Sequence record: PV785814.1
Strand: one strand, 5' to 3'
Length of the DNA stretch: 64,000 bases
A program made the translations under genes and the position numbers. The notes beneath the pieces are model-generated. The model had not been told where the DNA came from. It ran no database searches and saw only the letters and a list, made by a program, of their open reading frames with translations. This document shows, one piece after another, positions 6,304 through 45,000 of this stretch. Within the stretch, counting starts at the first letter, position 1, and each line of letters starts with the position of its first letter.

Positions 6304-7230
6304 ATGAAAAGTACAATGTTTTTAAACAATATCACGTGTATCGACCATGCATGGGTTGACGATATGGGTGAAATTAATGGTAACAGCTACAATCTTTGTG
6401 CTGAGATTACCGGTGAAGTTGACGAAACTGAACAAGTCGTGATTGATTTCAGCGGCTGTAAGAAAGCAATCAAGCATCTTGTAGACGATTCTGAATTCGC
6501 TATCGACCATCGTCTAGTTATCGTCGAGGGGTTTAGTGATGCGGTGTTGTCTCAAGTTGAAGATCGTCTTCGAATGCAAGTAGACACGCCAGTTTTCCAC
6601 GCAGTGTCTACAGTAAACGACTGGTATCAAGTCATCAAACCTAGCGAACTGATTGAAACAGACTTCAGAATCCCTAGCGATTCGCTGTACATGTCATATG
6701 TTGCTGAGTATCTTGAAGATATGCTACTTGAGCAGCTACGCAAGCAAGGTTATCCTGTTACACACGTCGCTGTAGAGCTTTCAGAGTCGTTTGACTTACC
6801 ATCATGGGCAAACAGTCACGTTGAATTCAATTACGCTCACGGGCTGCGTTCAAGCACTTCTTACGGGTGTCAGAATATCGCACACGGTCACCGTTCGTTC
6901 ATTGCAGTAGATCAGCACTTGAACAGCAAAGGTCGCAAGGTACTGAAGCGCATTGCCAAAGAAATGAGCGGCTATATTGCTTGGTCAGACAACATTCGCA
7001 AAGAAGATGAAGTGTCATACAAGTCACAGCGCGGTAACTTCTACATGCGTCACGAAAACATGATCGTGATACCAACTGAAACTACAGTTGAAAATCTCGC
7101 AAACTACATTGCAACGACATACGAAGAAGAATTCCAACGAATGGGTGTTCAGCGTGTGTGGGTTTCAGAGGGTCTATCAAAAGGCTCAGTCGTTGACATC
7201 AAAATCAACAAAGAATTGCTCTATAAGTAA
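6304..7230 (+). CDS. queD: QueD-like 6-carboxytetrahydropterin synthase (long two-domain form)
   Basis: CIDHA..GNSY..VVIDFS..K..K..VD..IDHR N-domain and a second HGL..GCQNIAHGHRS domain; adjacent to folE. Confidence 0.75.
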   Translation: MKSTMFLNNITCIDHAWVDDMGEINGNSYNLCAEITGEVDETEQVVIDFSGCKKAIKHLVDDSEFAIDHRLVIVEGFSDAVLSQVEDRLRMQVDTPVFHAVSTVNDWYQVIKPSELIETDFRIPSDSLYMSYVAEYLEDMLLEQLRKQGYPVTHVAVELSESFDLPSWANSHVEFNYAHGLRSSTSYGCQNIAHGHRSFIAVDQHLNSKGRKVLKRIAKEMSGYIAWSDNIRKEDEVSYKSQRGNFYMRHENMIVIPTETTVENLANYIATTYEEEFQRMGVQRVWVSEGLSKGSVVDIKINKELLYK

Positions 7231-7297
7231 TCAACAATAATTGTTTAGTAGCACGTCTCGGCGTGCTATTATTGTTTTCTATCAATGAGGAAATAGA

Positions 7298-7966
7298 ATG
7301 TTAGACAAAAATAAAGTAGATCCTATCCTAGGACAAAAAGTTGAAGCGCATCTTCGCAAAATCGGAATGCACACGCCGACTGTTGAAAACGGTCTAACTG
7401 ATGATGAAAAGAAAGCGATTCTTGAAGATCGATTTACTGACATCATGCAAGCTCTTGGTCTTGACTTGTCAGACGATTCGCTAGTCGATACGCCAAAGCG
7501 TTGGGCTAAGATGATGGTAAACGAGCTTATGAGCGGTCTATCGCCAGATATGTTCCCAAAATGTACGGCAGTAGACAACAAAATGAACTACGACCAGATG
7601 GTTTGTGAAAAAGGCATTACTGTTCTTTCACAATGTGAACATCACATCGTAACAATCGACGGGTTTGCAACGGTTGCATACATCCCGAAGAACAAAGTTC
7701 TTGGTCTTTCTAAGATGAATCGCATTGTTGAGTACTTCGCTCGACGCCCGCAGATTCAAGAGCGTTTGACTGTTCAAATCGCTGAAGCACTGAAGTTCAT
7801 TCTTGAAACTGAAGATGTTGCAGTGTTGATCGACGCCAAACACTACTGCGTGAAAGCACGCGGTGTTGAAGATAACAACTCAAGCACAGTGACTAGCCAC
7901 TTATCTGGTGCTTTCCGCAACGAACCAGAGGCTCGCGCTGAGTTTATGTCACTTGCACGAGGGTAA
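7298..7966 (+). CDS. folE: GTP cyclohydrolase I
   Basis: DTPKRWAKM, SQCEHH, GLSKMNRIVEYFARRPQIQERLT, HYCVKARG. Confidence 0.97.
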   Translation: MLDKNKVDPILGQKVEAHLRKIGMHTPTVENGLTDDEKKAILEDRFTDIMQALGLDLSDDSLVDTPKRWAKMMVNELMSGLSPDMFPKCTAVDNKMNYDQMVCEKGITVLSQCEHHIVTIDGFATVAYIPKNKVLGLSKMNRIVEYFARRPQIQERLTVQIAEALKFILETEDVAVLIDAKHYCVKARGVEDNNSSTVTSHLSGAFRNEPEARAEFMSLARG

Positions 7967-7969
7967 TTG

Positions 7970-9346
7970 ATGATCATTGAATACGTTATGTCTGCGACGG
8001 GTCATGCTCGTCTTGGTGCAGCACATAAACTAATGGACGTGGTTGACACGTCCTATTTGCGTAAAATTCTAGACGCAGCACAAGACCTCGATGGTGTTCA
8101 CAAAATCAGTATGCTGTACAACGCATATACTGAGAAGAAAGTCGGTCATCAAATCAATGATTTGTTCGGTGATTCTGTGTACAAAGTACACGTCGATTCT
8201 GGCGGTCTTCAGATTGTCAACCTAGGTTTAGACAACACACCAGAGCTTCGTAAAGCTGTTTACGAGAATCAAGCAGAGTCTGGTGACATTGGTATGTGTT
8301 TCGATGAAATCCCGTTGCACAATGAAGCAAAAGGCGGTGGCGCTGCTCGTATCAACACGAAAGATAAAGTTTTCATGTATGATCTAGCGTACAAGTACGG
8401 TGTCAAGACTGGCAAGAACATTCGCGCACAGATTGAGACGTATATCGCAACTGAAAGCAAGTGCAAGCCGTATATCATCTTACAAGGCAACTCAGACGAT
8501 GACTTCAAAGCATTCAGTGACGGCATTATGTCGCAACTCGAAGGCGTTGAAGAGTACATTGCTGGTTGTGCTGCTGCCGATACATGTATTGGTAATGGCG
8601 TACGTGAATCAATCGACATGATGAGCGTTATACCAAAGCTCAACATACCAGAACAAGCAAAGAAATCAGTTCACATGCTTGGGGTTGGGTCTGTTAAACG
8701 TCTATTGCCCGCTGTAGCTCTTATTAGAAGCGGTTATTTCGGTGATGAATTTCATATTAGCTATGACTCATCAACACACACGGGTTGTTTAACCAACCGT
8801 GAATACACAGATAAGCTCGGTCGTCGTAAGAAAATCTCAGGTCATGGTATCTTCAAAGATGGTAAGAAATTGCCTTCTCGTGAACTTGATGAAATGCTCG
8901 ACGAAGTATGGGGTCGATTCGGTGCTGTGTTACCTCGTGACAAAGAAGAGTTCAAAGATTTCGCAACACGCTTGTGGTTGAAAGAACTCGACAAAGAAAC
9001 GATGACAAATGAAGATATTGTGTTTGAAGTTGCATGTAATTTGTGTATAATCTTATCTCAAGTTAACAACTTCCAAGCGATTATCTCTGAAACGTTTGAC
9101 TTGAACACGCCAAAAGCTGCTGACTTGTCAGCGTTCTTCGGTGGTTCAGTTGAGACTAAAGAGCCGCAAGAGGGTTTCAAGAAGTGGTCAGCGATTCGTC
9201 GCCTTGATGTTCTTGATAAACTGTTAGACGTGAACACAGTCGAAGCGTATGATCGCTGGCACAGTAGCTACGTTGACAGACTACCGTCTATGCGCATTCG
9301 TCGCGGTACAACTGCTGAATTCCCAGCTTTCAAAGAACAAGAATAG
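7970..9346 (+). CDS. TGT-superfamily guanine transglycosylase (DpdA-like candidate)
   Basis: VDSGGLQ, CFDEIP, IILQGN, HMLGVGS, SYDSST correspond to TGT catalytic motifs; no canonical CxCxxC Zn motif seen; embedded in the que cluster. Confidence 0.75.
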   Translation: MIIEYVMSATGHARLGAAHKLMDVVDTSYLRKILDAAQDLDGVHKISMLYNAYTEKKVGHQINDLFGDSVYKVHVDSGGLQIVNLGLDNTPELRKAVYENQAESGDIGMCFDEIPLHNEAKGGGAARINTKDKVFMYDLAYKYGVKTGKNIRAQIETYIATESKCKPYIILQGNSDDDFKAFSDGIMSQLEGVEEYIAGCAAADTCIGNGVRESIDMMSVIPKLNIPEQAKKSVHMLGVGSVKRLLPAVALIRSGYFGDEFHISYDSSTHTGCLTNREYTDKLGRRKKISGHGIFKDGKKLPSRELDEMLDEVWGRFGAVLPRDKEEFKDFATRLWLKELDKETMTNEDIVFEVACNLCIILSQVNNFQAIISETFDLNTPKAADLSAFFGGSVETKEPQEGFKKWSAIRRLDVLDKLLDVNTVEAYDRWHSSYVDRLPSMRIRRGTTAEFPAFKEQE

Positions 9347-9375
9347 CGCCCTCGGGCGCTCTTTATGAGGTATAC

Positions 9376-10284
9376 ATGAGCAATTACGATCAAGTTTCAG
9401 CTATTGCTGCTGAACACTTAGGTAAAAAAGCAGGCGATTACAGTGATTTCGTCAACATTGTAAGCATTCGACCTGACTTACTCGTACCAATCCCACGCGA
9501 GTTAAACCGAACTGATTACGGCATTACTAACAGCGACTTTGCAGGGTTTGATACTTGGCACGGCTTTGAAGTTTCATCACTGACTGAACAAGGTCTACCA
9601 GTATCTGGTATGGCGAAAGTCGTGTATCCGAGTGATTCACCGAACATCGTTGAAAGTAAGTCAATGAAACTATACTGGAACAGCTTCAACATGGCTAAAA
9701 TCGGTGATAATCGCGCTGAAGTAGCACGAGCAATCGAAGTTATTGCAGCACGCGATTTGACAAACATCATCGGTGCACCTGTTCAAGTGAGTTTCTTCAC
9801 TGAAAAGCTAACTCAACCGCATGGTATGACTGGCTTCGCAGAGCTTGACAAATACGTATCTGAAGAGACTGTTTTCGACTCTGAAAGCGGCGCTGATACT
9901 GATTTGCTGCAAGAATCGCACATCAAGCGTTTGAAAGTATTCACACCTAATCTACGCTCGAACTGTCGCGTTACGCATCAACCAGACTTCGGTGATTTGT
10001 ACGTGTACATGAGCGGTGAGAAGACCCCGACTGTAGATAGCTTAATGCAATACATCGTGTCTTTCCGCAAAGAGAATCATTTCCACGAAGAATGTGTCGA
10101 AATGATTTACAAAGCGTTACTTGATAAGTTCAACCCAACTGAGCTTATGGTAACTGCACTATACACACGTCGCGGTGGTTGGAATATCTGCCCTGCACGT
10201 GCAACGCACGAAGAGCTATTACCTGAAGCACTAGGTAGTAAATCTGTCTCGCACACTAACGGAAGCTGTTTATTCCGTCAGTAA
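9376..10284 (+). CDS. queF: NADPH-dependent preQ0 reductase, bimodular type
   Basis: ESKSMKLYWNSF QueF motif, SNCRVTHQPD (catalytic Cys/Asp), ENHFHEECVE, YTRRGG. Confidence 0.93.
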   Translation: MSNYDQVSAIAAEHLGKKAGDYSDFVNIVSIRPDLLVPIPRELNRTDYGITNSDFAGFDTWHGFEVSSLTEQGLPVSGMAKVVYPSDSPNIVESKSMKLYWNSFNMAKIGDNRAEVARAIEVIAARDLTNIIGAPVQVSFFTEKLTQPHGMTGFAELDKYVSEETVFDSESGADTDLLQESHIKRLKVFTPNLRSNCRVTHQPDFGDLYVYMSGEKTPTVDSLMQYIVSFRKENHFHEECVEMIYKALLDKFNPTELMVTALYTRRGGWNICPARATHEELLPEALGSKSVSHTNGSCLFRQ

Positions 10285-10338
10285 TAAGAGCTATAATGAG
10301 TGTTCAATAGTGAGCACTCATATACTTGAGAGGTTAAA

Positions 10339-11055
10339 ATGAAAGTAGTATCTGTTCTAAGTGGTGGTCTTGACTCTACCATTCTTACATATTCACTAGT
10401 AGATCAATTTGGCAAAGACAATGTGTTTGCATTATCGTTCTACTACGGTCAAAAGCAGTCGATTGAGCTAGAAAAAGCGAAGTTGACTTGTCAAAAGCTC
10501 GGTATCGAGCATCGTCTAATCGACATTTCATTCTTAGGTGAAGTTGTTGCTCCTGTTTGTGCGAATATCAAAGGCACTGATGTTGCAATGCCGACTATTC
10601 AAGACGTTCTAGGCGACCCTCAGCCACCAACTGAAGTCCCATATCGTAACATGCTATTGAATACAATCGCGTTCTCGTTTGCTCAAGCGAATGGTTGTGC
10701 TGCGGTGTTTACTGGCATTCAAGTGCATGATGCATATGGCTATTGGGATTGCACACAAGACTTTCTTGATGGTATGAACCAAATCTCGTCACTGAATCGC
10801 CAACATGAAATCTCACTATGTGCACCGTTTGCTCAGATGTCAAAAGCTGAAGAAATCGCTATCGGTATAGAGCTTGGCGTGCCGTTCGAAGATAGCTTAA
10901 CTTGCTATGACCCGAACGAAGCGGGTGAAAGCTGTGGTGTATGTCCGTCATGTGCTGAACGCATCATGAACTTCGGCAAAGCGGGTATCAAAGACCCTGC
11001 ACCGTACTCGAAAGACATCCCGTGGGATCAAGTGTTTGCTAAGGCAGGTCATTAA
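10339..11055 (+). CDS. queC: 7-cyano-7-deazaguanine synthase
   Basis: SGGLDST PP-loop, YGQK, VPYRN, YWDC, C..CGVCPSC Zn motif. Confidence 0.95.
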   Translation: MKVVSVLSGGLDSTILTYSLVDQFGKDNVFALSFYYGQKQSIELEKAKLTCQKLGIEHRLIDISFLGEVVAPVCANIKGTDVAMPTIQDVLGDPQPPTEVPYRNMLLNTIAFSFAQANGCAAVFTGIQVHDAYGYWDCTQDFLDGMNQISSLNRQHEISLCAPFAQMSKAEEIAIGIELGVPFEDSLTCYDPNEAGESCGVCPSCAERIMNFGKAGIKDPAPYSKDIPWDQVFAKAGH

Positions 11056-29886: not shown

Positions 29887-30410
29887 CCATGAAGATTATA
29901 TTCTTGGACATTGACGGCGTTCTTAACAATTCGTTAGAAGTCGATGAACACAAGGACGTGTTACTTAAAGGCGAGTATCAAGGAATTTACTCACCGCGTT
30001 GTGTAGAAAGACTTAATGCACTCATAGAAAAGACTAACGCCAGCATTGTACTGACAAGCGTATGGCGTAATGGTCTTGACCTTGATGAGATTAATATCTT
30101 ACTCGACACAATGGGAATCAATGCGAAGTGCATTGGTAAAACTGATAATCTAGATCACAAATACTCATGGGCGTTTCGTGGCAATGAGATTCTTAAATGG
30201 CTCAAAGACAACGAAACACTGCTTGGTATGCATCATTATGATTATCGCAGCTATGTTATCTTAGACGATGACACTGATATGCTTTTGTGGCAACGACATA
30301 ACTATGTCAATTGCGACCATGAGATTGGTATGACTGATCGAACTGTAGCAAGAGCAGCATCAATCTTGAATCACGCACCTTGCGTTGATACAGGACAAGA
30401 ATTTTGTTGA
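29880..30410 (+). CDS. HAD-superfamily phosphatase (RNA-repair-associated HAD_SAK type)
   Basis: IIFLDIDGVLN, IVLTSVWR, RGNEI, YVILDDD. Confidence 0.8.
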   Translation: MVTMKIIFLDIDGVLNNSLEVDEHKDVLLKGEYQGIYSPRCVERLNALIEKTNASIVLTSVWRNGLDLDEINILLDTMGINAKCIGKTDNLDHKYSWAFRGNEILKWLKDNETLLGMHHYDYRSYVILDDDTDMLLWQRHNYVNCDHEIGMTDRTVARAASILNHAPCVDTGQEFC

Positions 30411-30472
30411 CATGACAACTTAAACATGTAATAATCAAATCTCAAACAACAATGACAAATAGGGAGCCTATA

Positions 30473-31498
30473 ATGTCACATGCAATCTACATCGGACGTT
30501 TCCGTCCATTCCACGTTGGTCATCTATCGACTATCACTCAAGCGTTTAATGATCTTAACTTAGATCAAATGACTGTACTCGTTGGTTCTTGTAATCGACA
30601 TCGTTCAGTGAAGAATCCCTTCACGTTCGACGAAGTTCGCTACATGATTAAGTGCAACTTACCAAGAGAACTGCGAGAGAAAGTTCACATCAAGTCACTT
30701 TACGATCACTCGAACGATAACGTTTGGGCAACTGAAGTTCGTACAAAAGCTAAGGGCGTAACGCACATCGTTGGCTATGACAAAGATGAAAGCAGCTACT
30801 ATCTGAAACTTTTCCCTGAGTTGAAGCACTATCAACCAAAGCCAATTGACTTAGCAGGCAAAGTTGTATCAGCAACTGATATTCGAGCGTGTTACTTCAG
30901 TGAAGTACTAATGAATAGCCCTTTGAGCGTTATTCTACCACAAGGCACGAAAGAGTTTCTTGCTGAATGGTCACAAACTGAGACATTCACTGATATGAAA
31001 GCTGAATATGATAGCTCAGTGCGTGAGATCAATAAGTTCTTAGACTATCCATACAAAGGTCACTTGAATATCGCGTGCGCTGATAACGTTGTGACATGTG
31101 CAGGTCACGTATTGCTTGGTACTCGTAAGAACAACCCGGGCAAGAACTGTCTAGCATTACCGGGCGGTCATAAAGCAGACAACGAAACGTTCTTGACTGC
31201 TGCATTGCGTGAGCTTAAAGAAGAAACATGCTTGAAAGTACCAGAGAAAGTACTGCGTGGATCTATCAAAGCTGAAAAGATGTTCGACGATCCGAAACGC
31301 TCTTACCCTCACACTCGTATCACTATGGCATATCATATTGACATCGAGCCTGATAACGATGGTAAGTTCCCTCGCATCAAACCTGCTGATGACTTAATCA
31401 AAGTCGAGTGGGTACCACTGAGCGAAGTTCGTGAGCTACAACATCTGATGTATGATGATCACTATCAGATCATTCAACACTTCACTGGCATCTACTAA
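30473..31498 (+). CDS. natV: Bifunctional NMN adenylyltransferase / Nudix hydrolase (NatV/NadM-Nudix)
   Basis: IGRFRPFHVGH (HxGH), KNPF, SATDIR, ALPGGH..ETF..AALRELKEET Nudix box; promoter TTGACA at 30407. Confidence 0.9.
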   Translation: MSHAIYIGRFRPFHVGHLSTITQAFNDLNLDQMTVLVGSCNRHRSVKNPFTFDEVRYMIKCNLPRELREKVHIKSLYDHSNDNVWATEVRTKAKGVTHIVGYDKDESSYYLKLFPELKHYQPKPIDLAGKVVSATDIRACYFSEVLMNSPLSVILPQGTKEFLAEWSQTETFTDMKAEYDSSVREINKFLDYPYKGHLNIACADNVVTCAGHVLLGTRKNNPGKNCLALPGGHKADNETFLTAALRELKEETCLKVPEKVLRGSIKAEKMFDDPKRSYPHTRITMAYHIDIEPDNDGKFPRIKPADDLIKVEWVPLSEVRELQHLMYDDHYQIIQHFTGIY

Positions 31499-31535
31499 CA
31501 AATGGGGCAGCAATGCCCCTTCGAGGAAAATAACT

Positions 31536-32158
31536 ATGAATATCAATCTGCTAATTCGTAATGAAGTAAAGAACAACACGAGTCGTTACGCTACTGTCTA
31601 TGACATCATGGACGATATGCTTGCTAAGTTCCCTCAAGCGCGTGCTAGTGCATCAAGCAATGATGGTACAATGAAGAACAGCACATTAAGACGTGAAATC
31701 TCACGTGCGCTTGATAGTTCTACTAACTGGAAAGCAATCGGCAAGACTGATTCAGGTCGTAAGCTGTATGAACGCTTACCAAACGGCAACTCACTAGAGC
31801 AATTCGTATGAAAGCATATCGCATTAAAAAAGCAATAGATGATCTTGACATTGAACAATATGATCTGTTTGTGCAGAGTCCATTCCATGATGAAGACTTC
31901 TTTATGTCACGCAGACCAGAACGACCACCAATGTGTCATGCGCTGATTATTCAGTTCTTAGACTTGTACGATGAGCTAGACGTATCTGAAGACGAAATAC
32001 CAGAACTCATGACACACTGGCACACTCAAGCAGAAACAAATATCAAATCGCTTGGGATGTTTCGTAAGTCACTGCTAGAACAGAAACACTCGATTGAAGA
32101 TCAGATACATCAAACTGAAATAACAATCGAGAAACTACAAAAGGTATTCAAACAATGA
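31536..32158 (+). CDS. Two hypothetical proteins (31536-31811; 31808-32158)
   Basis: GAGG RBS, ATGA overlap. Confidence 0.7.
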
Positions 32159-32778
32159 CAGGCTACCCATTAGTACATAAAATGCAAGCAGTCGTACGCT
32201 CATGCCAAACCGTTGACCAACTGCTTAACGCTAGAAAGTATCTGTTACAGTGTGACAAATTCGCTGCAACTGCTGAAGATGGTCGCGGTTGGTTAGTTGT
32301 GACTGAAGCAGTTGACGAACTCGATGCTATTATCACTGATAAGCTGTGTGAAATTAGTAACGTGCGTGGTATGCGTGCTGTTGACACTGGCGTTATCAAA
32401 CTCGGCATTGACATTCATGGCGTAATAGACAAAGCACCAGAACTTTTCACGCTCATTAGTAAGCTACCAGTTGAAGTGCATATCATCACTGGCATTAAAG
32501 AAGAACTTGACACTGACGTACCTAGTGATTTAGAATACGACTACTGGTTCAGCATTCATGAGCAATGTGAAATCGACGGCGTTGAAATCACATACGATGA
32601 ACAGAACAGACCTCACGTTGATCCAGACATCTGGGACAATATGAAAGCACGCTATTGCAAAGAGCAAGGCATTACTATGCTGATTGATGACTCACCGCAT
32701 TACGCTAGTACTTTCGAAGGTCTTGATACATTGTATCTTCAACTAACTAACACTAAACGCAATGAGTGGCGCAAATGA
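32155..32778 (+). CDS. Protein with C-terminal HAD-like domain
   Basis: LGIDIHGVID, HIITG, MLIDDS motifs. Confidence 0.6.
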   Translation: MTGYPLVHKMQAVVRSCQTVDQLLNARKYLLQCDKFAATAEDGRGWLVVTEAVDELDAIITDKLCEISNVRGMRAVDTGVIKLGIDIHGVIDKAPELFTLISKLPVEVHIITGIKEELDTDVPSDLEYDYWFSIHEQCEIDGVEITYDEQNRPHVDPDIWDNMKARYCKEQGITMLIDDSPHYASTFEGLDTLYLQLTNTKRNEWRK

Positions 32779-35045
32779 ACGTAGCAAATGTAATGAAAGA
32801 ACACGCAGCTATCCAAAACGCATTGATGGATTATCTCGATGCTGAATTCGACGGCGAAGGTCATATCGAATATGCAGAGTACTTCGAACAAGACGAAGCA
32901 TGGGACGTGACATACTACGATGGTGAGTTCCTTCGTGAACTAACTGTAACAGCAACTGCACTTGAGCAATGGATGAACAAATGATCGAAAGCACAATGGC
33001 TAATCATGAGCTAATCATGAACGCAATTGAGAAGTTCTTGTGCTTGAACTCTGTCCAATACACTGATGCCATTCAATATGATAAAGACAATCTCGGCTTC
33101 GATGTCGCGATTGTCGAAGAATCCGAGAATGGCACTGAATACACAGACGTGTTCATCCATAACTATCAACTAGAAAAGTACCTATGAATATTAACGATGT
33201 AATGCTTCACCACGAGAAGATTACTGACGCATTGCATAGCGTTATTAAGCAAAGGACTGCTAATCGAATCGTGTCTATCACATATGATAAAGATCGCTAT
33301 CTGTTTAAGATTGTACTCAGTGCATCTAATAGCTTAGACGATAGCGCCTTTGAATGGAGTATGTGCGTGACCAACGAAGCGATAGAAAACCAAATCTATG
33401 CGGAGACATTCACATGCAATTACCAGAATACTTGAGCCACATTACTGTAAAAGAAAACGTAATCACTATCGACTCAGCACGAGATAAAGTACTCGTTGTT
33501 GACTATCTCACTAATGCAAAAGCTAAGTTCCATATTGTCCAAAAGACAGTTAGCCGTTGCGAAATCCATGTTAAACGTCTAGGGTAATACAATGACAGAA
33601 CCAACACTGACTAACTGGAACGAGCTTAAAGACCAAAGCTTAGTGTATCGTATCAATAACGAAATACTACACCCACTCGGCTATGCTGTTGTACTCAATA
33701 CCGAAACAGGCACAAGTGACCGAGTACTAATCGCCGATGAGTTTAAATTCTCTGGCGAAGTACACGACAAACATAAAGATAATGTCACCATGACTGGACT
33801 ACTCGCGACTCATAAAGTAGTAGAACAACAAATCGCTAGTAAGTTCGGACTGAAAGACATATGGCATAATCTAGTAGACTGTACCGATAAAGTGTTCGTA
33901 TCCGATAACTCAGATTTAGAAAAAGCATATGAGTTCCAATACGCAGATACAGAAAACGAAATCACTGAAGGCGATTGCTACTCAATAGAAGTATACGGCA
34001 CATCGGTATGGATATCTGATGACGAACAATACTTATTAACTGCTTGTAACGACGGCTGTGGCAATAGAGATATGTATCTCTTCGCGCTAAAGAATCTATC
34101 TAATGTAGAAATGTATTAGAAACTTAAAGAAAAGGGTTGCATTGTGCAGCCCTTTCGCGTATCATACACATATCAAATCAAGAAAGGAAAACATTATGAT
34201 TGGTCTATCTATTATAATACTCGTGTTCGTCGCAATCTTAGCGTTCGACTCAGTTGAAAGCATCATGAGCAACGAATACCGAACTGGCATCTGCATCTTC
34301 CTTGTCATATGCGCTGTCGTTAACGTAGCTAACATGTTTGTTATGCACAAATACGGAGTAATGCTATGAGCTTAACAATACTTCTACTCATACTCGTATG
34401 CTGTGTAGTACTAACAGCTATCTGTTTGTTCAGCTTCATCAACAAACCTGGCTTTGTTAAACTAATACTCACTGCTGTACTCGGCTTTATCTCATATGTG
34501 CTATTACACATCACGGCTGGTGCATTATGAGCGTGCTATTAATGTTCTTAATCGTTATCGCATGTGCCTGTGTCGTAGTAGCTCTATTCTGTTTTATCAT
34601 ATGCCTATTCGATGATAACGAATCAGACTCAGACAATGACAATAAAAGTGGTAGCTCATTCGCTACTAGAGAATCAATGAACACGTGTATTCGTGTAATG
34701 CAATCAATGTGAGAATACTATGACTCAAACACAAATACAAACAATCCGTGCAGTCTGTATCGACAATCAATCTCATCGTATAGACAAACCAGAACCACCT
34801 AGCGGCTTGACATTCGGCAAAGAATACATTGTCCACATGTATAACGTAAACGAACATACAAACAAACCACCTATGATTCGTATCACTAACGACGACAATA
34901 AACGCGCTAGTTATGTCGCTGCTCGTTTCAAACTGATTGTATGAATATACTAAACGAAATACCAACTAATTACATTATGCTTCTGCTATGCGTTCTAGCA
35001 GGCGTAGCTGGATGGTGCCTGAGCGATATATCAAAGCATGACTAA
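32775..35045 (+). CDS. Block of small hypothetical ORFs, including three tandem paralogs (32775-32984, 32981-33187, 33184-33435), 33592-34119 and several small membrane proteins (34196-34369 onward)
   Basis: Overlapping junctions; shared M..H..I..A...L N-termini in the paralogs. Confidence 0.65.
34131..34198 (+). promoter_or_regulatory. Terminator-hairpin/early-promoter composite element, copy 2
   Basis: AAAGGGTTGCA-TTG-TGCAGCCCTTT; TTGCAT-17-TATCAT. Confidence 0.85.
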
Positions 35046-35136
35046 AATCGCTTAGAATGCGATTCAGTGCGTCTCAGAGCATGGTACGTTATTGATTAAA
35101 ACTGATATATCGCACCATGCCTCGTTTAAAAGCACA

Positions 35137-35244
35137 TGTGCATAAATCTGTGGATAAGATGTGTGTAAAACTGTGCATAAGTTATTAAAATTGTGGATAA
35201 AATACAGATTTTCGTGTGGATAAGTCTGTGGATTACGTGGATAA
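35137..35244 (-). promoter_or_regulatory. Array of eight co-oriented DnaA-box matches (candidate origin or DnaA-binding locus)
   Basis: + strand TGTGCATAA 35137, TGTGGATAA 35149, TGTGTAAAA 35162, TGTGCATAA 35172, TGTGGATAA 35192, TGTGGATAA 35215, TGTGGATTA 35227, CGTGGATAA 35236; six fit TT(A/T)TNCACA exactly, two have one mismatch. Confidence 0.8.
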
Positions 35245-35352
35245 GTTTTTGGCGTCAAAAATGGGTGATGTCTCATCGGCTCCTGTGTAGTAAGATGTAG
35301 TCGAGAAAGGTACTTGCCTCGTGAAAATCTAATCCGCTTCGCATCTTTTCGC

Positions 35353-35382
35353 TTGACATGCAATGCCATCCTGTGAGAGAAT
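35353..35382 (+). promoter_or_regulatory. Promoter downstream of the DnaA-box array
   Basis: TTGACA-18-GAGAAT, followed by GGGAGG RBS and ATG 35418. Confidence 0.55.
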
Positions 35383-35417
35383 GAGAAGCCAACTGAACCA
35401 CCTTGGGAGGGTGTGAT

Positions 35418-38400
35418 ATGATTACATTAGCGTTGTTCTACATGAGCCGCGACATGAATTACAGTGAGCGACCAAGTGATTTGTATCTTGGTACGTGTAT
35501 TTTAGACTTCGCCATGATTATAGTGGCGTTCTGTGGTATGATGATGTTTACGGGAAATTGGTAATGATTAGTATTGAGTTACACAAGAAAGTAGTAGAGA
35601 AGAAAGCAGTATTGCCAGATCATGCAATGGTGAGAATCGAGACGTATTACCGTTCGTTGAGTGGTTATATGAACTTCATTGATTCGAGTCATCACATTCG
35701 TGGTGTTACTGATGGTTCATATATGCTAGTTACTGAAGATGGTGCTTTCTTTCACATAGAGAAAGACCGTGTAAATGGTGATAAGCAGACGAAAGAAAAG
35801 CACGATGGTCAGCTTGTAGCGGTACATGCGCGATTAGCTTTGCCTGCGAAAGATTGGGATTGGTATCCGTGTAAGTGGAAAAGCGGTCGTCTTGTCTATA
35901 CGTATAAAGAGCAAGATTTCGTTGAAGAGCATCACGAGCTAGTGGTTGGTGAGATAGTTGATATTTTTGCCGATGACGATGAGTATGCCGAAGCGCCAAA
36001 TGAAGCGACTGTGGTGTTGAGTCGTCCGGGACAAATTGTGGTAGAGAGTGATGGTGTGTTAATTGCTTTCAACATTGACAATATGCGTTCGACTGGTAAT
36101 ATCGTATCTGACTGTGGTGAACATTTACTAGTGGGTAAGTTTGCCGTAAGCGAATACGACGAAGAACTTCATTCGTAAAAAGATTAAGAAAAGGGTTGCG
36201 CTATGCAGCCCTTTCTTGTATTATCTCTATATCGAAACGACATCGACTAACAGAGAGAGAATATTATGTTTAACGCAGCTACAGTACTGAATCAGCTTAC
36301 ACAATCTAAACACGGTCATTCACGTCTTGTTGCCATGACTGGTGCTAAGAACTTGCTTCAATCGCCAGAAAATAGATTCGTTTCTTTTCGTCTGCCTAAA
36401 GCAGTACGCGGTATTAACTACGTGAAAATCACGTTGAACAGCCAAGACTTGTATGATGTTGAGTTTGGTAAAGTCTCGAACAAAGCTTGTCCAGAAATGA
36501 AAAAGCTTGGTATTAAAGTGATGTTGCCTAGTTACGAAGTGAAAACACTAGTAGAAGGCGTGTACAATGACTCATTGAAAGCATGTTTCGAGCGTGAAAC
36601 TACACTTTTATTGTCACTTTAAGCAAAAAGTGCTTGACTGTTCCACCAGCATAGCCGATAATAGCTACATCAAGACAAGAGAGAGAACATTATGACTTAC
36701 ACTGAAGCTAAAGCAATCGCGCCTGTTGAACTAATCATGTCAATCACTGAAGATCAGTTCTACGACATTATTGCAGAATCAAACGCTGCTGGCGATTTCG
36801 CGTTCACTGCTCAAGTTATGAAAGTTCAATCTGACCTCCGTCGCGCACGTAAAATCAATTACTAAGGAAAATATTATGACTGTATTCAATTCTGAGCTAG
36901 AAGCATTCGCAAAAGACCACAATCTAGACCAATCTGCACTTGAAGAACTAGCAGATGGTGTAATGCGCCGTGTTCAATATGCAGTATCTAACGGTCATAT
37001 TATGACTGAAGAGCTAATCATTCAAGCGACGCAGCATTGGTTTTTGTCTCGTGAAAAGCTGTTTAACGACTATCTTGGTAATGTTAACGGCACACGTGAC
37101 AAGCTGAACAGCGAAGTTTACGACTTACTAAAGGGGAAATAAGATGAATTTATTCGCGCAAGTCGCTAGTGAGCTACTAGAAGACGAAGAGCTAATGTCT
37201 AGCGTTGAGCGTTATACGTGTCATATGATGGAAGATCGCATGGCAGTTATTGCTCCGCATATCCCGTTTTTCGACGTTGAATCGTACATCGTCAATAAAG
37301 GTCGTGAGTTTCTACACGCCATTAACAACAATCCAGACTTGCTTGGTTATGAACTAAGCACAGCGTCGAAAGAGTCGCTTGCTGATTCTATTCGCGACAA
37401 TTGGGCTGGTGCGTTCGTGCATGTGCTGTCATACGATGAAAACTGTCGTCGTGATATGAACGCTTTTACGCTATGTCGTAAAGCATGGTTGAAATTTATC
37501 GTGGATGCGAATGATGAAATATCTCTATGAGATTCAACAAGCGGTTCGTGAACTGCTAGAAGACGAGTCTATTTTGACTGACAAGACTCGCTATACTTGC
37601 AATGAAATCGCCACTGGCGTAGTTGCTAGAGCATGTGAATTTGATGCATCATATCGTATTGCCATTCGAATAGCGGTTAAAAACACGTTATCTGAAATCG
37701 GTGGTCGATTTGTAAACTCGGTTTATGCCAAAGCTAAAGCTGGTGATATTCAGTTATCAGAAATTGCCATGATTAAAATTGGCAATGACATGAAAATCGA
37801 CTATTATCGTGGTACGTTTATTCATGACATTGCACGTATTGGCGAGAAAGAATACGACTTGGAGTTATTTGCCGAGTATCGTCGCCAGTGGTTGGAGTTC
37901 ATTTTGACTCAATCTAGTGAGCATGAGAACCGCAGAAATGCTTAGTCTTGACGAACGTCTTGCCATGCTTGACGATATACTAAGCGAGAAAACGCCAGAT
38001 GAGATACTAGCTGAATTGCAATCGTATCCCGCCATTGGCCCAACTGTAGAGGAATTCACGAAGGATTTTCCTATGACATTACAAAAACAAATCAAAGCTG
38101 CTGCTGAACAAGTACTGGCTGAATCGAAAACTGACATTACAGCGTTGGACGATTTCACTTGTTGCCAGATTGCAAACATCGTAGACAATGACGAACTTGA
38201 TTTCGAAGTGCTTAATTCAGTGTACAAGTCTCTAGAAGATCTCAAAGTACCATTCTTGGATACGCTTGACATCCCGACTAAAGACAAAGAAGCTGCACGC
38301 CATTTATCTGCGTTCTTGAGTTTTCTTACTTTCGACCATCATGAATTGCGTGAATATCGCATAGAATGGCTAGAGTTTATCATCGCCAATATCGAGGGTA

Positions 38401-41400
38401 TCAAATGACATTAGCTGAATTAGCAGTAGACCATCCGTATTACTGTAGCGATTCGAACTATTACAGCAATGATGCTGGTATGGTCTATGACACAATGAAA
38501 GAGTTTTTAGACGAGTTCGAAGACGCCGACGTTGATATGAACTTGGTTTTTCGCTGGGATGTCAAGCCAGATTTATCAGATGAAGATTACGAAACACCGC
38601 TTGGTACGTACTACGCTGAGATCTTTATGATGCATCAACGTAAAGGTATTTTCGCGCCGTTTCATATTCGGTCTATTACAGAAGAAGACGTACCGCGTTT
38701 TGTCGCATACTTGAAACCCCATCAACAAACGTTACAACAACTTTGGAAACCGCTATGATTATTCTCAATATACTAGCGTTTTATATGCTGGTGGCAGTGG
38801 GTGCTTATTTGTATGTTGCACTAGGCGATTACATTTGGTACAAAATGAAAGGCAAGCTTGACAACAAGTTTCCGATCAACTCGATTGAAACGCACAAATT
38901 CATTGCAGTAATGAGTTTATTCTGGTTGCCACTTGTGCTAATCTTCTTGAAAAACTCAGTGAAGGGGCTTTATGAAAGACTATAGTCGCGCCGTTATCGT
39001 AGTCAACTACAAGAGCGGTAATTCAGTTGCGTTTTGGACGTATCGTTTTTCGTATTCACCACAGTCAGTAACTTGGCATGCAGCGGTGAATCCGTACGAC
39101 GAAAAAGAGAGTAATGCACTACGTGAGCGATTAGCACTGATGCGCATTGCATTGTTAGAAGACCCAGTTAAACTCGCAACCGAAATCAACGACATTGAAA
39201 GCGTATGGGTTGCAGAGCGTTATCTAGGTGAAGAAGGGGAAATACCAGAAGATGAGTGATTTACTAGCGGGTATTGTTGGCGGCATTGTGATTATTTTCA
39301 TGGCAATTGTTGGTCTGATTTGGTCAATTATTGAGTTCGTCATCGGTATTCTTGTATTAATCGGGGCGGTTATTGTCGGCGTATGTGCGACTGTACTAGG
39401 TGCAGCTATTGTAACGATAGCATGGCCTTTTGTAGAAGCTAAGAAAGCATACGACGCGCATCAAAAACGCAAGAATGAAAAGCTTTAATTTTTCATTACC
39501 AGTCAAGGTCGAGCACAAATCTCTTGTGCTTGATCTTTGTCGCTGCTCAGTTTGCCATGTTGACTTCGCTGTTTCTGACTGCATAGAAGACTACGGTCAT
39601 CATGACGGTTGGGAAATGCCTGCCTATACTGAACTACTTTGTCCCAAGTGTGAGTGTGGCGGTTGTATTGAAGATTTCTGGCCAAGCGATAAAGCAGTTT
39701 TAGAACATGGCGAATATCTGCAAGAGCACAAGCCGATGGAATTCGACCAATTTCGAAAGTGCTTTCATGACGTATACAAGGTGAAATAATGATTTATCGT
39801 TTCTGGGAAACACCAACTGGCGACTGCCTTATTGAAATGGTCGATGAACACTATAATATGGGCAAGCGTGCTTACATGACAGATATGATGGATTTCTATC
39901 GTACTGAACAAGGCAAACATGCTTTACTGAAACACGTTCACGGTTGGGGTACTGTTGAACTTGCTGATTTTGATATTCGCGAGTTAAAAGGTCTTGGCAC
40001 TGTCGAACTCGAAGAGCTTACTTTAACAGCCAATGACAAGTCGGTATTGAGTCGTTGCATTGATAAAGAAGAATTCGACTACGCTATGCTTTACTACAGC
40101 GATTACCAAAGCGTATGTCACAACGTCGTTGAATCACGCGAGTTTCATGCACTACGTAATAATCTAGTCAATGCTCATCGTGACTTACAGACTTGGTTGA
40201 AATTACAAGGTGTAGACGTTGAATAAGATGTATGCCATACGTCCGTGTCTAAATGGCTTTCTATGGAAAGTCGTTATTTTCGCGAACAACTACGAGCGTG
40301 GTACAGTCTCGTATCATTTCACCAGAGCAGGCGCATATAACTTGTGTAGACAATTAAACGAGGACAGACAATGAGCCAAATGGAATACAATAAAGGCATT
40401 CTACATCTTGTGGATAAGTTTGTGGATAAACTTGCTGAAGAACTAGTAAGTGATTCTGACTTGCCGCATTGGTGTGAGACCAAGCTTGAATATCTACGGG
40501 AAAACTCAGAAGAGTTCGGGTTGGTTTTCATCAAAGACCGTTGTTACCGTGTAACGTTTGAAAACGAGCGTGAAGATCTGTATCAGATTGCCAGAGCCGA
40601 CGTTCAGCCGAATGGTGATATTCACTTTGAGACGTATCATTATAATGGTGGTGCTCATTGGACTGAAGTTGTAGAGGGTGCGTTATGAGAACGGTCGAAC
40701 ATGTGCAAGTTGTATCTGGTGATGAAGCGGGTTATGCTACTGTAACAGAAGATGGTGGTTTTGCTCGTGAGTACAAGTCGCTGACTGAAGTTCTCGTTTC
40801 TACGGATTCGTATTACACTGATGCGTATTACTTCGTGAACAAAGACAATGCCGAGCGTTTCATGGAGAATCTCAATGAATGATCTAGTAGGCAATGAAAT
40901 CACCGCGGGTATGGAAGTCGTAGTGATGACACGTGCATTTGGTTTAACTCGTAGTCATATGCGTCTTTACACAGCTACGGTGATTTCAGTTAAGCGTGGT
41001 CGAGCATTGGTGCGTTGTCATGACACCAAGCATGAAACGACCGTTCGTAAAACTAACATCATTGTTCCGAAAGACAGTTCTGAAAACGCTATGCTTAAAG
41101 AAGCTCTTGGTAATACGCTTGAGTACATCGAGCAGCTAGAGAACAGTGCCGGTCGCATGGACGTTCTTGATGTGATTCACGACGATCTACCGAGTGACAT
41201 TGGTGATTGGGACTTTCAAGAGTACGTGAGGTTAAGCAATGGCTAAACGATTCTGGGCTGTGCAGTTCGAAGACGGTTCTTTTATTCATGAGAATCCCGA
41301 CTATGAACTAGGTCGAACACGTCAATTACAGCGTACAGACGACTTAGACAAGGCTAAACTCTGGCAAAAACCAGGTATGTTACAGACATACATGAAGAAA

Positions 41401-41472
41401 AACGGTCGATTTGCACCGGCAATTTGGGGTTCAGTGCTGGTGGAAGTACAAAGAGAGGTGGTAATTGGCTAA
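35418..41472 (+). CDS. Block of about 20 small hypothetical early ORFs (e.g. 35418-35564, 35564-36178, 36266-36622, 36693-36864, 36876-37142, three paralogs 37144-38408, 38405-38758, through 41239-41472)
   Basis: Dense + strand ORFs with overlapping junctions; no family confidently recognised. Confidence 0.65.
36190..36268 (+). promoter_or_regulatory. Terminator-hairpin/early-promoter composite element, copy 3
   Basis: AAAGGGTTGC-GCTAT-GCAGCCCTTT; TATTAT; ATCGAAACGA; AGAGAGAATATTATG. Confidence 0.85.
36634..36695 (+). promoter_or_regulatory. Early promoter and conserved leader
   Basis: TTGACT-17-GATAAT-AGCTACATCAAGACA..GAGAGAACATTATG. Confidence 0.75.
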
Positions 41473-42049
41473 ACTGTACTACAACTATTCCGCTATGAAT
41501 GCGGGAAAAAGCGCACAGCTATTGCAAGCTGCTCATAACTATGAACAGACTGGTTCTACTGTGTGGTATTTTAACTACTATCAAGACAACCGTTTTGGTG
41601 GTGTTGGGAAAATCTCTAGCCGTATTGGCTTAGAGCATGACGCTGTATTGTTCAGTGAAGAGTTCGATTTCATTCATTACGCTATGCATGAGAATCACGT
41701 GCCAGCGGCTATTTTCGTTGATGAATGTCAGTTCTTGACCCAAAAACAAGTGCTAGACCTAGCTTATATCGTCGATAAATTCAATATTCCAGTGCTTTGT
41801 TACGGTATACGTAATGATTACATGGGTAATTTATTCCAAGGTTCTGCTGCGTTGATGTGTCATGCCGACGAGATTCGCGAAATCAAAGCTATGTGCTCAG
41901 TTGATGGTTGTCATAAGAAAGCAACTCATATCGGGTTATTCATTGGCGGAACTCGTGTGCTTGATGGTGAACAGACATATATTGGTGATACTGATTACCG
42001 TAGTATGTGTCGTAAACATTTTATAGAGGGAATTGATGGTACTAGCTAA
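41465..42049 (+). CDS. tk: Thymidine kinase
   Basis: YSAMNAGKS, IFVDECQFL, LCYGIRNDY, LF.GS, C..C Zn motif, Y.SMCRKHF; TTG start. Confidence 0.95.
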   Translation: MAKLYYNYSAMNAGKSAQLLQAAHNYEQTGSTVWYFNYYQDNRFGGVGKISSRIGLEHDAVLFSEEFDFIHYAMHENHVPAAIFVDECQFLTQKQVLDLAYIVDKFNIPVLCYGIRNDYMGNLFQGSAALMCHADEIREIKAMCSVDGCHKKATHIGLFIGGTRVLDGEQTYIGDTDYRSMCRKHFIEGIDGTS

Positions 42050-45000
42050 TTTACTATGTACGTTGATTGCTGCATACATTGGCAATTACATTGGTCGTTA
42101 TCTGACAGTACAGAGTGGTACATACAGAGGTCGTGATCCGTTTGCGTTTCGTAACATGAATCACTTTGTGAATATCGTCGTTGCATTTCTCGTATGCGCG
42201 TTAACGGGTGGGTTATGAGTCATATACAAGATTTAGAAGCACAGATTCGCGAACTTGAGCGTGAGCTGAAAGAAGAGCGAAGTCGTTGTCACCATACTCG
42301 GGTGACTTACAAGAACGGGGCTGCTGATGGTGATCCGTGGTCTAGAGATCAGTACTGGCGAGATATTGAATGTCTTGATTGTGGGTTTAAATCTCATATT
42401 GACAGCGACATCAACCCAACTGACTATAACTTTCGCGGTGCATTAGGTTCTGTCTTACACGTGCCTAATGAGAAATACGCGGTTTATGTTGAAGTGAAAA
42501 AACTAATTGAGGAATCAGATGAAATACGCACGCTATATTGAGTTCAATGACAACGAAGGTGAAACGTGGCATCGTTTTATCCCAATGACCGATCCGTGTC
42601 TAGACAAGTTTCTAGATGTAATGAAGCTCGTTGAAGATTCAGACGACACGTATTCAATTGAAATAGACCGTGAAGGCAAGGTTGTTCAGTACGATGAATC
42701 ATACGTGAAAGTGCTAGTTGACGAATCGGCTATGTACATGAACGGTTACATGGATGCATATGCCGTGTGCAACATCAACGAAGACATTTTCAAATACGTA
42801 GGTGACTATGAAGAAGCTTACGAAACACTATACAAAATGGGGTGGGCGAAATGAGCCAAGCATTATATGACGTAGTAAAAGCGTACAACGATGAGCATGG
42901 TTATTCAAACGAGCCAGATTCAATGTATGAAACGTTCATTGAATGTCTAAGCAAGCGTATTGTACAAGAAGAAAACGAGTCTGAGCATCGTTGGTATGAC
43001 ATTCGTTCGGTTGTACATGCTGTTGACATCGACGGAACAGAGCGTTACTTCCAGACGTTTGATTATCACATTACTGGTGATAACTGTGCAAGTGACATGG
43101 ATTTAGACATGCCGACGCTTGATGATGTGACAGAAGTACACCCACATCAAGTAACAATGACTGTTTACAAGTAATGAAAGCCCCTTAATTGGGGCTTTTT
43201 TAGGTCTGAAGAAAATTATTTTAATTTTTTTGCAAAAAGTGGTTGCGTGGTGAATGGTAATTGCCTATTATAGCTACATCGAAACGAGATACACATTCTT
43301 AAACGACTATAGAGAGACGACATTATGCCTAGCAACCTAAACAACATCAAAATCAAAGACATTCGCGAATTCGGTATCAGCACTGTTGAGTACAAAGATT
43401 TCACAATCTTCGCTACTGAAGAGCTTGGTGAGATTATCCTACGCGCTGCTGTATGTTACGACGCAGACTCTGACGCTCACGTATCAGTAGTTGACGTATG
43501 TGGTGACACTCTGAAAGAAGCGAAAGCTTACTTGCAAGCTGAATTGAACGACATCAAACACACTGCTGGTCAAATCGCTGAAATGGCAATTGCACTAGAT
43601 GACTTTGTTGGTCAATACGAAGTGCTAGTTGAGAAGTTCAACAAGCCAGTAGCAGTAGCTGCGCCAGTTGTTGAGACTAAGCCAGAGCCTAAAGCTGAGA
43701 AGAAAACAAACGCTCGTGGTCAAGCTGCACGTGACTTAGTAGCCGAGAAAGCAACTGAACTTCTTGGTCTAACTGAGATTACATTCGAGCAGCGTGGCAA
43801 ATACAAAGACTGGTACATCATGGGTACTGACGCTGAAGGTGAAGCATTCGAGCAACGTCTAGACGTATTCAAGAAGAAACTAGTAGTAATGGGCGCACTA
43901 TGATTATCACTAAAAGCAGAGTCGTGTACGACCGATATGAACTAACATGCGCTAACGACTTATTAGAGCATGTTAGTGAAGTCCGACGCTACGACGACGA
44001 ACTTGACTTGTATCACGATAGCGGTAAGCCAGGTATTCTAACTCGACTTGCCACTATCAAACTCAAAGACGTTGGTGAGGTTCAATCTATCGACGCTCTA
44101 GAGCATTTCAAAGACAACTATGAACGGTATTGGGAGGTTCTAAATGGCTGATTTAATCGCGGGTGTTGTGTATATCGTAGTTCTAATCGGTATTGTTATC
44201 TACTGTGTATACGATGAGATTCGCAATAACAAAGATAAGCCGATGAAAGGCGATGATGCAAGTAGCATTTTTATAATAGCAGTTGCATGGCCAGTTATCG
44301 CAATGCTTCTTCTAAGTGCGGGTATGGCTCATGGTATTGAGAAGTCGTTTACCTACGTTGTCAACAAGCTAAAGGGATTGTAATGGTTAATCAAATTAGA
44401 CGCATCAATGGCAACGATTTTCTAGTGACCTCTCATCGTGACAACAAGTGTGAAGTACAAAAGCTTTCACATACTGAATTGGTAGTTGACACGTACGACG
44501 AAACAGAACTAGAATCATTCGAACTTATTACAACATTATCGGACACATTCTAATGCAACCAATAGACGTAAGAGACAGACTGCCAGAACGAGACGGCACT
44601 TATCTGTGCATTCGATACGGTATGCCGTATATGCCAGAAGCGATTGAGTTCTTTATTGACTGCGACGACATCGGTGTTTGGTCAGATGAGATTCTTTGCA
44701 GACAAGGTGGCGGTGGTGTTAAGCCTTACAATCAATTGTCTAACGCTGAGAAATACTGGCGAACCAATTACGGTAAAGTGATTTACTGGTTTGAAGTCCC
44801 TGAGAATCACATGAGCAGCAACGATTTCAAAGACTACATGCTTGCTGAACTATGCAGTCGCGGTATTGATCCGGATGAAGTCACTGGTACATGGGATAGA
44901 GTAGAAGCACACGGAGAAACAACATGCACAAAATGACAGTACACGTATGTGACTATTGCGACTTTCAAAGCATTCTAGAGCGTGAAGTCGCAGCACACGA

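Follow-up and report, generated by a model that had tools for sequence, protein, structure and literature searches.

An array of DnaA-type boxes in KVP40-like phages and its likeness to the injection stop region of phage T5

The non-coding gap of phage QD01 and its features

Vibrio phage QD01 is a KVP40-like member of the T4 superfamily that was isolated on V. natriegens. We analyzed a stretch of 64,000 nt (hereafter the window) of its 248,370-bp genome (PV785814.1), in which a position equals the record position minus 62,000. Our subject is a 372-bp gap at 35046-35417 between two rightward early gene blocks, which carries eight 9-mers of the type bound by the bacterial initiator DnaA. A first-pass annotation of the window had drawn attention to these boxes and had described the phage as T4-like and the gap as gene-free, and both descriptions were borne out. 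QD01 encodes its own complete T4-type replication and recombination set (gp43, gp45, gp44/62, gp41, gp61, gp59, gp32, UvsX, UvsY, UvsW, Dda, topoisomerase II and gp46/47). The gap is found in all 31 KVP40-like GenBank records and is unique in the QD01 genome.

The record does annotate a 101-aa hypothetical protein, QD01_174, on the minus strand at 35064-35369, spanning the array. However, this frame shrinks to 24–48 aa in most relatives and to 70 aa in VS1. Since the frame is not kept, a coding reading of the gap was rejected, and QD01_174 is a spurious call, a product of the repeated boxes. No Rfam family, tRNA or tmRNA was detected in the gap, and the homologous loci likewise contained no Rfam family. 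Neighboring genes matched only families of unknown function, and no recognizable Rep gene adjoins the element. The earlier remark that protein annotation would not reveal the array was correct. The features of the gap are as follows.

35046-35417, no strand: non-coding gap
35044-35087, plus strand: left block, AAAATCGCTTAGAATGCGATTCAG..TCAGAGCATGGTAC, about three 10-bp units, with a TTAGAAT core at 35052-35058; kept in all relatives, including those without boxes
35089-35110, no strand: AT-rich patch of about 22 bp between the left block and box 1
35109-35127, plus strand: conserved ATCGCACCATGCCTCGTTT block between the AT-rich patch and box 1
35137-35157, minus strand: boxes 1 and 2, the first DnaA-box pair, TGTGCATAA-atc-TGTGGATAA on the plus strand; +85/+97 from the TTAGAAT core, as in phage T5
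35162-35170, minus strand: box 3 (TTTTACACA), found in the QD01 clade only and unconserved
35172-35180, minus strand: box 4 (TTATGCACA), invariant in the nine box-bearing relatives
35192-35200, minus strand: box 5 (TTATCCACA), with variation at the N position only
35215-35244, minus strand: boxes 6-7-8, a 30-nt module, TGTGGATAA-gtc-TGTGGATTA-CGTGGATAA on the plus strand; verbatim in Firmicutes clusters and aligned with the second box pair of phage T5
35246-35261, no strand: inverted repeat (five T, N, five A) directly after box 8, read from the sequence and kept in box-bearing clades
35272-35292, plus strand: right conserved block CTCATCGGCTCCTGTGTAGTA, whose CTGTGTAGTA part recurs upstream of the left-block homolog in Xanthomonas phage XaC1
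35353-35382, plus strand: sigma-70-type promoter TTGACA-N18-(TGn)GAGAAT, the predicted driver of the downstream genes; a direct-repeat relative of the left block

The eight-box array

The eight boxes start at 35137, 35149, 35162, 35172, 35192, 35215, 35227 and 35236 and occupy 108 bp (35137-35244). All are of the TTATCCACA type on the minus strand, that is, of the TGTGGATAA type on the plus strand. Six fit TTWTNCACA exactly, three of them being TTATCCACA, whereas the boxes at 35227 (TAATCCACA) and 35236 (TTATCCACG) have one mismatch each. Re-reading agreed with the first-pass annotation in the starts, the common orientation, the division into six exact and two one-mismatch boxes and the spacings of 12, 13, 10, 20, 23, 12 and 9 bp. 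Several 9-mers with no more than one mismatch to TTATNCACA, lying within ~100–200 bp and far above chance expectation, were regarded as a DnaA-box cluster, and the array is such a cluster. Perfect TTATCCACA boxes occur 7 times in the window versus 0.48 expected, and this number was reached in 0 of 100 shuffles; chance is therefore excluded as the origin of the array. It is also the sole site with at least three boxes per 150 bp in the whole genome. Outside the array, one-mismatch boxes are not enriched (46 against ~70 expected).

Two further properties had been emphasized in the first-pass annotation. Spacing near the helical turn proved real, the box starts being phased at 11.0 bp (Rayleigh R = 0.89), but the effect is modest, as 197 of 5000 random placements were equally good. 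The lack of GATC in the gap is also true but ordinary, since 36% of inter-GATC gaps are at least 372 bp long. No GATC-free stretch in the genome is longer than the one that contains the array (2,326 bp, window 33292-35618), and this length is itself close to the maximum expected by chance for 701 sites.

A second perfect, co-oriented pair, TGTGGATAA-gtt-TGTGGATAA, was seen at 40409-40429, as the VDKFVDK codons of a small gene. Being coding and without conservation in phi-Grn1 or PG216, it was rejected as a second element and is probably lineage-specific.

Conservation and loss among KVP40-like phages

We aligned the gap from 12 genomes. In three clades and two genera, including Mylasvirus (CZ01 and nt-1), boxes 1, 2 and 4–8 are found at the same positions with the same spacing (12-23-20/21-23-12-9 bp). 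The equivalent of box 3 has 4–5 mismatches outside the QD01 clade and is not a box there. Thus, of the eight boxes originally reported, all are present in QD01, but only seven are conserved, box 3 being specific to the QD01 clade. Variable columns made up 6 of 63 in the boxes and 22 of 51 in the spacers (Fisher p = 5e-5), and the free N of TTATNCACA accounted for 3 of the 6 variable box columns. With boxes steady, spacers drifting and half of the variable box columns at the free N, the alignment indicates that the boxes are under selection matching DnaA-type recognition. Between Mylasvirus and QD01 the array is 80% identical, whereas the right flank is unalignable at 36%.

The opposite pattern was found in the clade of KVP40, phi-pp2 and VH1_2019. 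Here the flanks are ~75% identical, the array segment is 47% identical and not a single box is left. Conservation at this locus had been proposed as a check on the array; seven boxes are kept in three clades and none in the KVP40 clade. Because that clade lacks the boxes and yet keeps the flanks, the array is dispensable. Searches for further relatives yielded KVP40 and VH7D only in IMG/VR, and a metagenome scan with a neighboring protein gave no match.

In nt-1, a 12-bp tandem duplication (CATACTCATTAC..CATACTCATTG) was observed in the AT-rich patch, homologous to window 35088-35100. It moves all boxes about one helical turn away from the TTAGAAT core, to +97, compared with +85/+86 elsewhere.

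Relationship to the injection stop region of phage T5

The first-pass annotation named oriC, datA and DARS as precedents and missed what we found to be the closest one. In T5-like phages, the terminal repeat includes the injection stop signal (iss), a region with eight conserved DnaA boxes arranged in pairs 3 bp apart (Heusterspreute 1987, as cited in Davison, bioRxiv 10.1101/866236). Davison proposed capture of these boxes by membrane-bound DnaA. When the three-box module of QD01 was used in a BLAST search against 50,697 phage genomes, 358 records matched, many of them T5-like. An unbiased search with the 45-nt left block, which contains no box, matched 407 phage records outside the family of QD01; these were again mostly T5-like, with the matches located in terminal repeats. 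The left block and the sequence upstream of the T5-like boxes are alike at 23 of 28 positions, and 1 of 300 shuffles was as good.

The spacing of the parts also agrees. The first box pair lies at +85/+97 from the TTAGAAT core in QD01, VS2, VS1, phiST2, VH7D, T5 and SA001, and at +86/+98 in CZ01 and Boggle, a T5-like phage of Klebsiella. T5 and SA001 have a second pair at +146/+158. Pair spacers are atc (boxes 1-2) and gtc (boxes 6-7) in QD01 and gtc in T5 and SA001. The alignment of QD01 with T5 is colinear from the block through both pairs, and places QD01 boxes 6-7-8 opposite T5 TGTTGATAA-gtc-TGTGGATAA-cttaaataa. In T5, the module lies within the annotated iss feature (9140-10149), and a major nick is annotated at 9748/9749, ~230 bp from the last box. 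Given the same block, the same offsets and the colinear alignment, we regard the QD01 element, on this sequence comparison, as a relative of the T5 iss DnaA module, be it by descent, by transfer or by tight convergence.

Both systems belong to lytic phages with their own replisomes and consist of a conserved non-coding region with about eight DnaA-type boxes, in which pairs 3 bp apart (gtc or atc) have the same orientation in both phages and a TTAGAAT-type block (the palC/palD region of T5) is located 85 bp upstream. They differ in that T5 has two pairs per copy, an inverted second copy, further repeats and the major nick, all in terminal-repeat or first-step-transfer DNA. QD01, in contrast, has the genome and virion of a T4-type phage and no known terminal repeat, and its one copy holds 7–8 co-oriented boxes, including additional single ones between the pairs. 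A counterpart of the second, inverted T5 copy (IRC-spacer-IRD) was not found in QD01, whose genome holds no other copy of the gap. Beside the DnaA boxes of the T5-like iss region (T5 record ~9520-9640), we noticed by eye repeats resembling Fur boxes, e.g., GATAATCATTCTC and AATGAGAATCATT.

Occurrence of the two halves in other genomes

The exact 30-nt pattern of boxes 6-8, spacer included, was found in 8 of 185,579 bacterial genomes, all Firmicutes, and in five contigs of a metagenome scan. The Firmicutes matches are intergenic DnaA-box clusters; one is beside tsaD (gcp), and another precedes a pair of DnaD-like and DnaI-like genes. The B. subtilis cluster at the tsaD/gcp position binds DnaA in vivo (PMC3245932, PMC2533591). 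In its degenerate form, TGTGSATAA-gtc-TGTGGATWA-YGTGGATAA, the pattern recurs exactly in intergenic DnaA-box clusters of Clostridia and Bacilli, and similar but inexact copies were seen in non-coding stretches of gokushoviruses (Microviridae) and within the coding sequences of some viral contigs. Since the gtc spacer keeps recurring, the module may be a composite site that DnaA prefers. Capture of a host oriC was considered and rejected, as the three-box pattern had matches in Firmicutes and none in Vibrio or other gammaproteobacteria.

The left block is more widespread. It was also found in Ounavirinae, jumbo phages and Xanthomonas phage XaC1, in E. coli chromosomal islands (e.g., one at thrW) and on ~1,390 plasmids, mostly conjugative enterobacterial ones; in an IncX4 plasmid, for example, the iteron origin is ~500 bp away from it. 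The combination of this block with DnaA pairs at +85 was found only in T5-like and KVP40-like phages.

Local architecture of the gap

The left block has the consensus AAAACCGCTTAGAATGCGnTTnAGAGCGTTTTAGAG, with about three degenerate 10-bp units and no DnaA box inside. It showed no RNA family, tRNA or consensus RNA fold, and in a promoter scan it scored below the sigma-70 consensus. Sigma-32, sigma-54, sigma-E, MotA-box, ArgR, Fis, PmrA and RcsB sites were compared with it by eye and rejected, as none fits. The block and the promoter at 35353-35382 are related as direct repeats (CGCTT-N-AGAG[AC]AT). This early promoter, downstream of the element, has an extended TG and a weak -10, and it is not preceded by the A-rich element that typical QD01 early promoters have.

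The DNA next to and within the array is easily melted. In the AT-rich patch, the 20-bp window at 35090-35109 ranks with the least stable 0.14% of the genome and, within the array, a 30-bp window ranks with the least stable 0.13%; windows of the gap span the least stable 0.13–0.4%. Base composition changes at the gap (~30000-44000, with the step at ~35200) with no change in gene orientation: GC skew rises from ~0 on the left to +0.09 to +0.145 on the right, and AT skew falls from ~0.10–0.18 to ~0. The GC-skew step (+0.136 with 5-kb arms) is in the top 1% genome-wide and has the direction expected of an origin.

No exact IHF site (WATCAANNNNTTR) was present; the single match with one mismatch (35085-35097) does not fall within the array and is in sequence that is not conserved, and across the window such matches are as frequent as expected by chance. 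A GAGCATGGTAC/ACCATGCCTC hairpin was considered as an RNA structure and rejected, because it is lost in CZ01 and nt-1.

Assembly ends in the gap

Deposited KVP40-like assemblies from three laboratories end within this same 372-bp gap. The ends correspond to ~35341 (R10Z and R11Z), 35311/35312 (PVA8, PVA23 and PC-Liy1) and ~35075 (TCU_VP02_YC), and that of V09 is ~1 kb away. The R10Z record is a clean circular permutation cut between CCGCTTCG and CATCTTTTTGCTTGACA, with no terminal redundancy. A coverage break, or else a nick, a preferred end or a repeat boundary in the virion DNA close to the DnaA module, may underlie this clustering.

Comparison with known DnaA-box and origin systems

Chromosomal DnaA-box clusters outside oriC, such as those of B. 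subtilis and E. coli datA, resemble the array in being dense intergenic groups of consensus boxes, and the three-box module is verbatim in the Firmicutes clusters. Such clusters bind DnaA stably and restrain initiation and/or regulate neighboring genes (PMC3245932, PMC2533591). They are, however, host loci near oriC that act in trans on host initiation, whereas the phage array has a fixed partner element and is carried by an amplifying lytic genome. In addition, datA needs an IHF site, and none credible exists in the phage array. DARS (PMC5835720) differs in that its core boxes I and II are opposed, while the QD01 boxes are all co-oriented.

The left half of E. coli oriC (unwinding element, then R1, R5M, tau2, I1 and I2) is similar in its polarity: an unstable AT stretch is followed by TGTGGATAA-oriented boxes at ~11 bp spacing. 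The oriC sequence used for this comparison was confirmed by 100% identity to E. coli chromosomes. Nevertheless, oriC also has three 13-mers, an IHF site, many GATC sites, an opposed right half and DnaB loading, none of which was found at the QD01 array. A canonical oriC-like origin is disfavored because of the lack of GATC and 13-mers, the single box orientation and the loss in the KVP40 clade. An origin-like role, on the other hand, is favored by the oriC-like polarity of the boxes relative to the AT-rich patch and by the top-1% GC-skew step.

Iteron-plasmid origins with DnaA boxes (RK2 oriV, P1 oriR and the R6K/IncX gamma origin) likewise combine short direct repeats, an AT-rich stretch and DnaA boxes. 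In the phage, however, the 10-bp units are few and degenerate and are not accompanied by a Rep gene, and in the plasmid no DnaA pair stands at +85 from the block. Finally, the T4 origins oriF (uvsY) and oriG (gene 34) consist of a promoter with a downstream unwinding element and are primed by R-loops; they are singly dispensable and are not conserved among relatives. In QD01, too, a genome of the T4 type has a promoter-like block with an unstable AT patch after it. The T4 origins, in contrast, use MotA-dependent middle promoters and no DnaA, and the QD01 left block falls short of a sigma-70 promoter. KVP40-like phages have AsiA but no recognizable MotA (PMC2988021).

Possible roles of the array

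It is very probable that host DnaA binds the array; DnaA is the sole factor common to the Firmicutes hosts and the Vibrio phage. The first-pass annotation had proposed either an origin that borrows host DnaA or a decoy that titrates it. Of this, the presence of a genuine, selected DnaA-type array in a T4-like lytic phage stands, whereas the decoy would be feasible only late in infection and leaves the fine architecture unexplained. We favor, with a probability of about 0.4 relative to the alternatives below, a role in cis, in which the array would be a docking site for host DnaA on the phage chromosome and one half of a composite non-coding element common to KVP40-like myophages and T5-like siphophages. 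The order of this putative element is the TTAGAAT block, 85 bp with the easily melted AT-rich patch, and box-RTC-box pairs. DnaA-ATP would form a head-to-tail assembly on the boxes, like those on DnaA-box clusters or the left half of oriC, and the complex would act locally and early, holding or structuring incoming or early-replicating DNA. It might also open the adjacent AT-rich patch, where phage replication could start via an R-loop or through gp59/gp41 helicase loading. Such a site would be accessory rather than an essential origin, because the KVP40 clade manages without the boxes; it may be redundant for initiation or anchoring, as T4 origins are. A local role in cis is favored since the architecture, the skew step and the dispensability fit it.

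Several observations speak against this proposal. To our knowledge, phages of the T4 type do not require DnaA. The boxes disappeared from the KVP40 clade with no visible compensation. Neither GATC sites nor an opposed box set is present, unlike in gammaproteobacterial oriC, and the AT-rich patch is short and without 13-mer repeats. The cumulative genome skew follows transcription and has no global extreme at the gap. QD01 carries genes for 7-deazaguanine precursors (FolE, QueC, QueE and QueF-like; record 68304-73055, 133713-134408 and 154730-155611, i.e., window 6304-11055 and beyond). Its DNA is possibly modified at G, and DnaA binding to G-containing boxes could thereby be affected. In addition, the homologous T5 module is in the terminal repeat, while T5 origins were mapped near the genome center (10.1101/866236), which counts against an origin role if the function is shared.

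A broader idea is possible but doubtful: the TTAGAAT block, the 85-bp AT-rich spacer and the phased pairs may form a single cis-module that is kept or exchanged by unrelated lytic phages, namely T5-like siphophages of enterobacteria and KVP40-like myophages of Vibrio, and recruits host DnaA to the infecting chromosome for a common early step. This step could be a checkpoint at docking or entry that depends on DnaA, or a first origin primed by it. If so, the T5 injection stop signal would be one case of a wider mechanism, and KVP40-like virion DNA might have a defined discontinuity beside the module, as hinted by the clustered contig ends.

Alternatively, the array may control transcription, either as an insulator or roadblock against read-through from the tiny genes upstream or as a regulator of the promoter at 35353-35382, which would couple early expression to the host DnaA-ATP level, i.e., to the growth state. 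The array lies exactly between two rightward early units, no intrinsic terminator was found upstream of it, the boxes all point one way relative to transcription, the same way as those of T5 beyond its pre-early operon, and the promoter is atypical. B. subtilis DnaA-box clusters are known to regulate neighboring genes (PMC2533591) and DnaA stimulates pR-dependent transcription in phage lambda (PMC8203912). We consider this role unlikely, however, as the 108 bp from the last box to the -35 hexamer are too far for simple activation or repression, the promoter is kept in the box-less KVP40 clade, the sequence between array and promoter differs in CZ01 and nt-1, and T5 already has a terminator ahead of the module. 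A function linked to DNA entry or to a terminus, as suggested for T5, would have membrane-associated DnaA capture the module on incoming DNA and pause or anchor it, or would make the module the mark of a virion-DNA discontinuity (a preferred end, a repeat boundary or a nick). It is in line with the colinearity with a module inside the annotated T5 injection stop signal (10.1101/866236), with the nearby T5 nick, with the assembly ends of three laboratories in the gap and with the occurrence of the left block on conjugative plasmids and on first-entering T5 DNA. Still, this is quite unlikely: QD01 has a single module copy with no inverted partner, the R10Z record has no terminal redundancy and the T5 capture model is itself only a proposal. 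Furthermore, T4 genomes are circularly permuted and injected in a single step, which we assume to hold for KVP40-like phages too.

A sponge with no role in cis would soak up DnaA-ATP as the phage genome amplifies, or would promote its hydrolysis in the manner of datA, and thereby shut off host initiation. By sequence, each genome offers seven or eight high-affinity-type boxes; with a burst of ~300, as reported for a related phage (PMC10213691), this amounts to ~2,000 sites, compared with ~200 DnaA monomers per origin in E. coli, where the five-box mioC region titrates ~8 monomers per copy (PMC5835720). Plasmid-borne box clusters disturb initiation (PMC5835720), B. subtilis clusters restrain it (PMC3245932), and GATC is absent for 2.3 kb around the array. 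Against these points, there is one array per genome with no enrichment elsewhere, and the sink would be large only late, when blocking new host rounds gains little. Nor does titration account for the strict TTAGAAT offsets, the phasing and the AT-rich patch, or for the same layout in T5, whose DNA is single-copy when the module acts; moreover, the IHF site that datA requires is not conserved here. Pure titration is thus very unlikely. It is highly improbable that the 9-mers are bound by a phage-encoded protein of similar specificity or are the decaying remains of DNA taken over from some other element. The unknown function of all neighboring genes, the ability of the boxes to decay, as seen in the KVP40 clade, and a possible movement of the element between phage families could be cited for it. 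However, substitutions mirror the degenerate position of DnaA sites, the array outlasts its flanks across two genera, and selection for the identical composite module also operates in T5-like phages and on Firmicutes chromosomes, which have no such phage protein in common. A tblastn search of QD01 for a gene resembling DnaA domain IV gave no match, a weak test with an approximate probe sequence, and such a binder was set aside.

Relation to previous work

Conserved DnaA boxes in a lytic phage are already known for T5. In the literature searched, we found no report that links KVP40-like phages with DnaA, describes DnaA boxes in the T4 superfamily, or notes the shared composite layout or the wide spread of the left block. 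Phages of the T4 and T5 types serve as textbook examples of independence from the host initiator. A selected DnaA-site array in a T4-type phage, laid out like the T5 module, suggests that both use host DnaA for something. The question of the T5 injection stop function, now 40 years old, gains a second, genetically independent system on V. natriegens, a fast and safe laboratory host, with the natural box-less relatives of the KVP40 clade as controls; we rate the interest of the element as moderate to high because this old open question becomes tractable in a second system. An origin-like role, if true, would make the element the first site in the T4 superfamily where DnaA assists initiation, and titration, if true, would be a host-takeover device made of DNA only.

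Hairpin-embedded early promoters of QD01

The gap was also considered as a repeated promoter-early stem-loop cassette, a reading rejected because the QD01 genome has no second copy of it. Several other QD01 early promoters, some of them outside the window, do sit in a hairpin, aaaGGGTTGACTtcgGTCAGCCCttt (record 20204, 28200, 58988, 83903 and 151216). These resemble the promoter-early stem-loop cassettes of other T4-type phages, and the gap studied here is not one of them.

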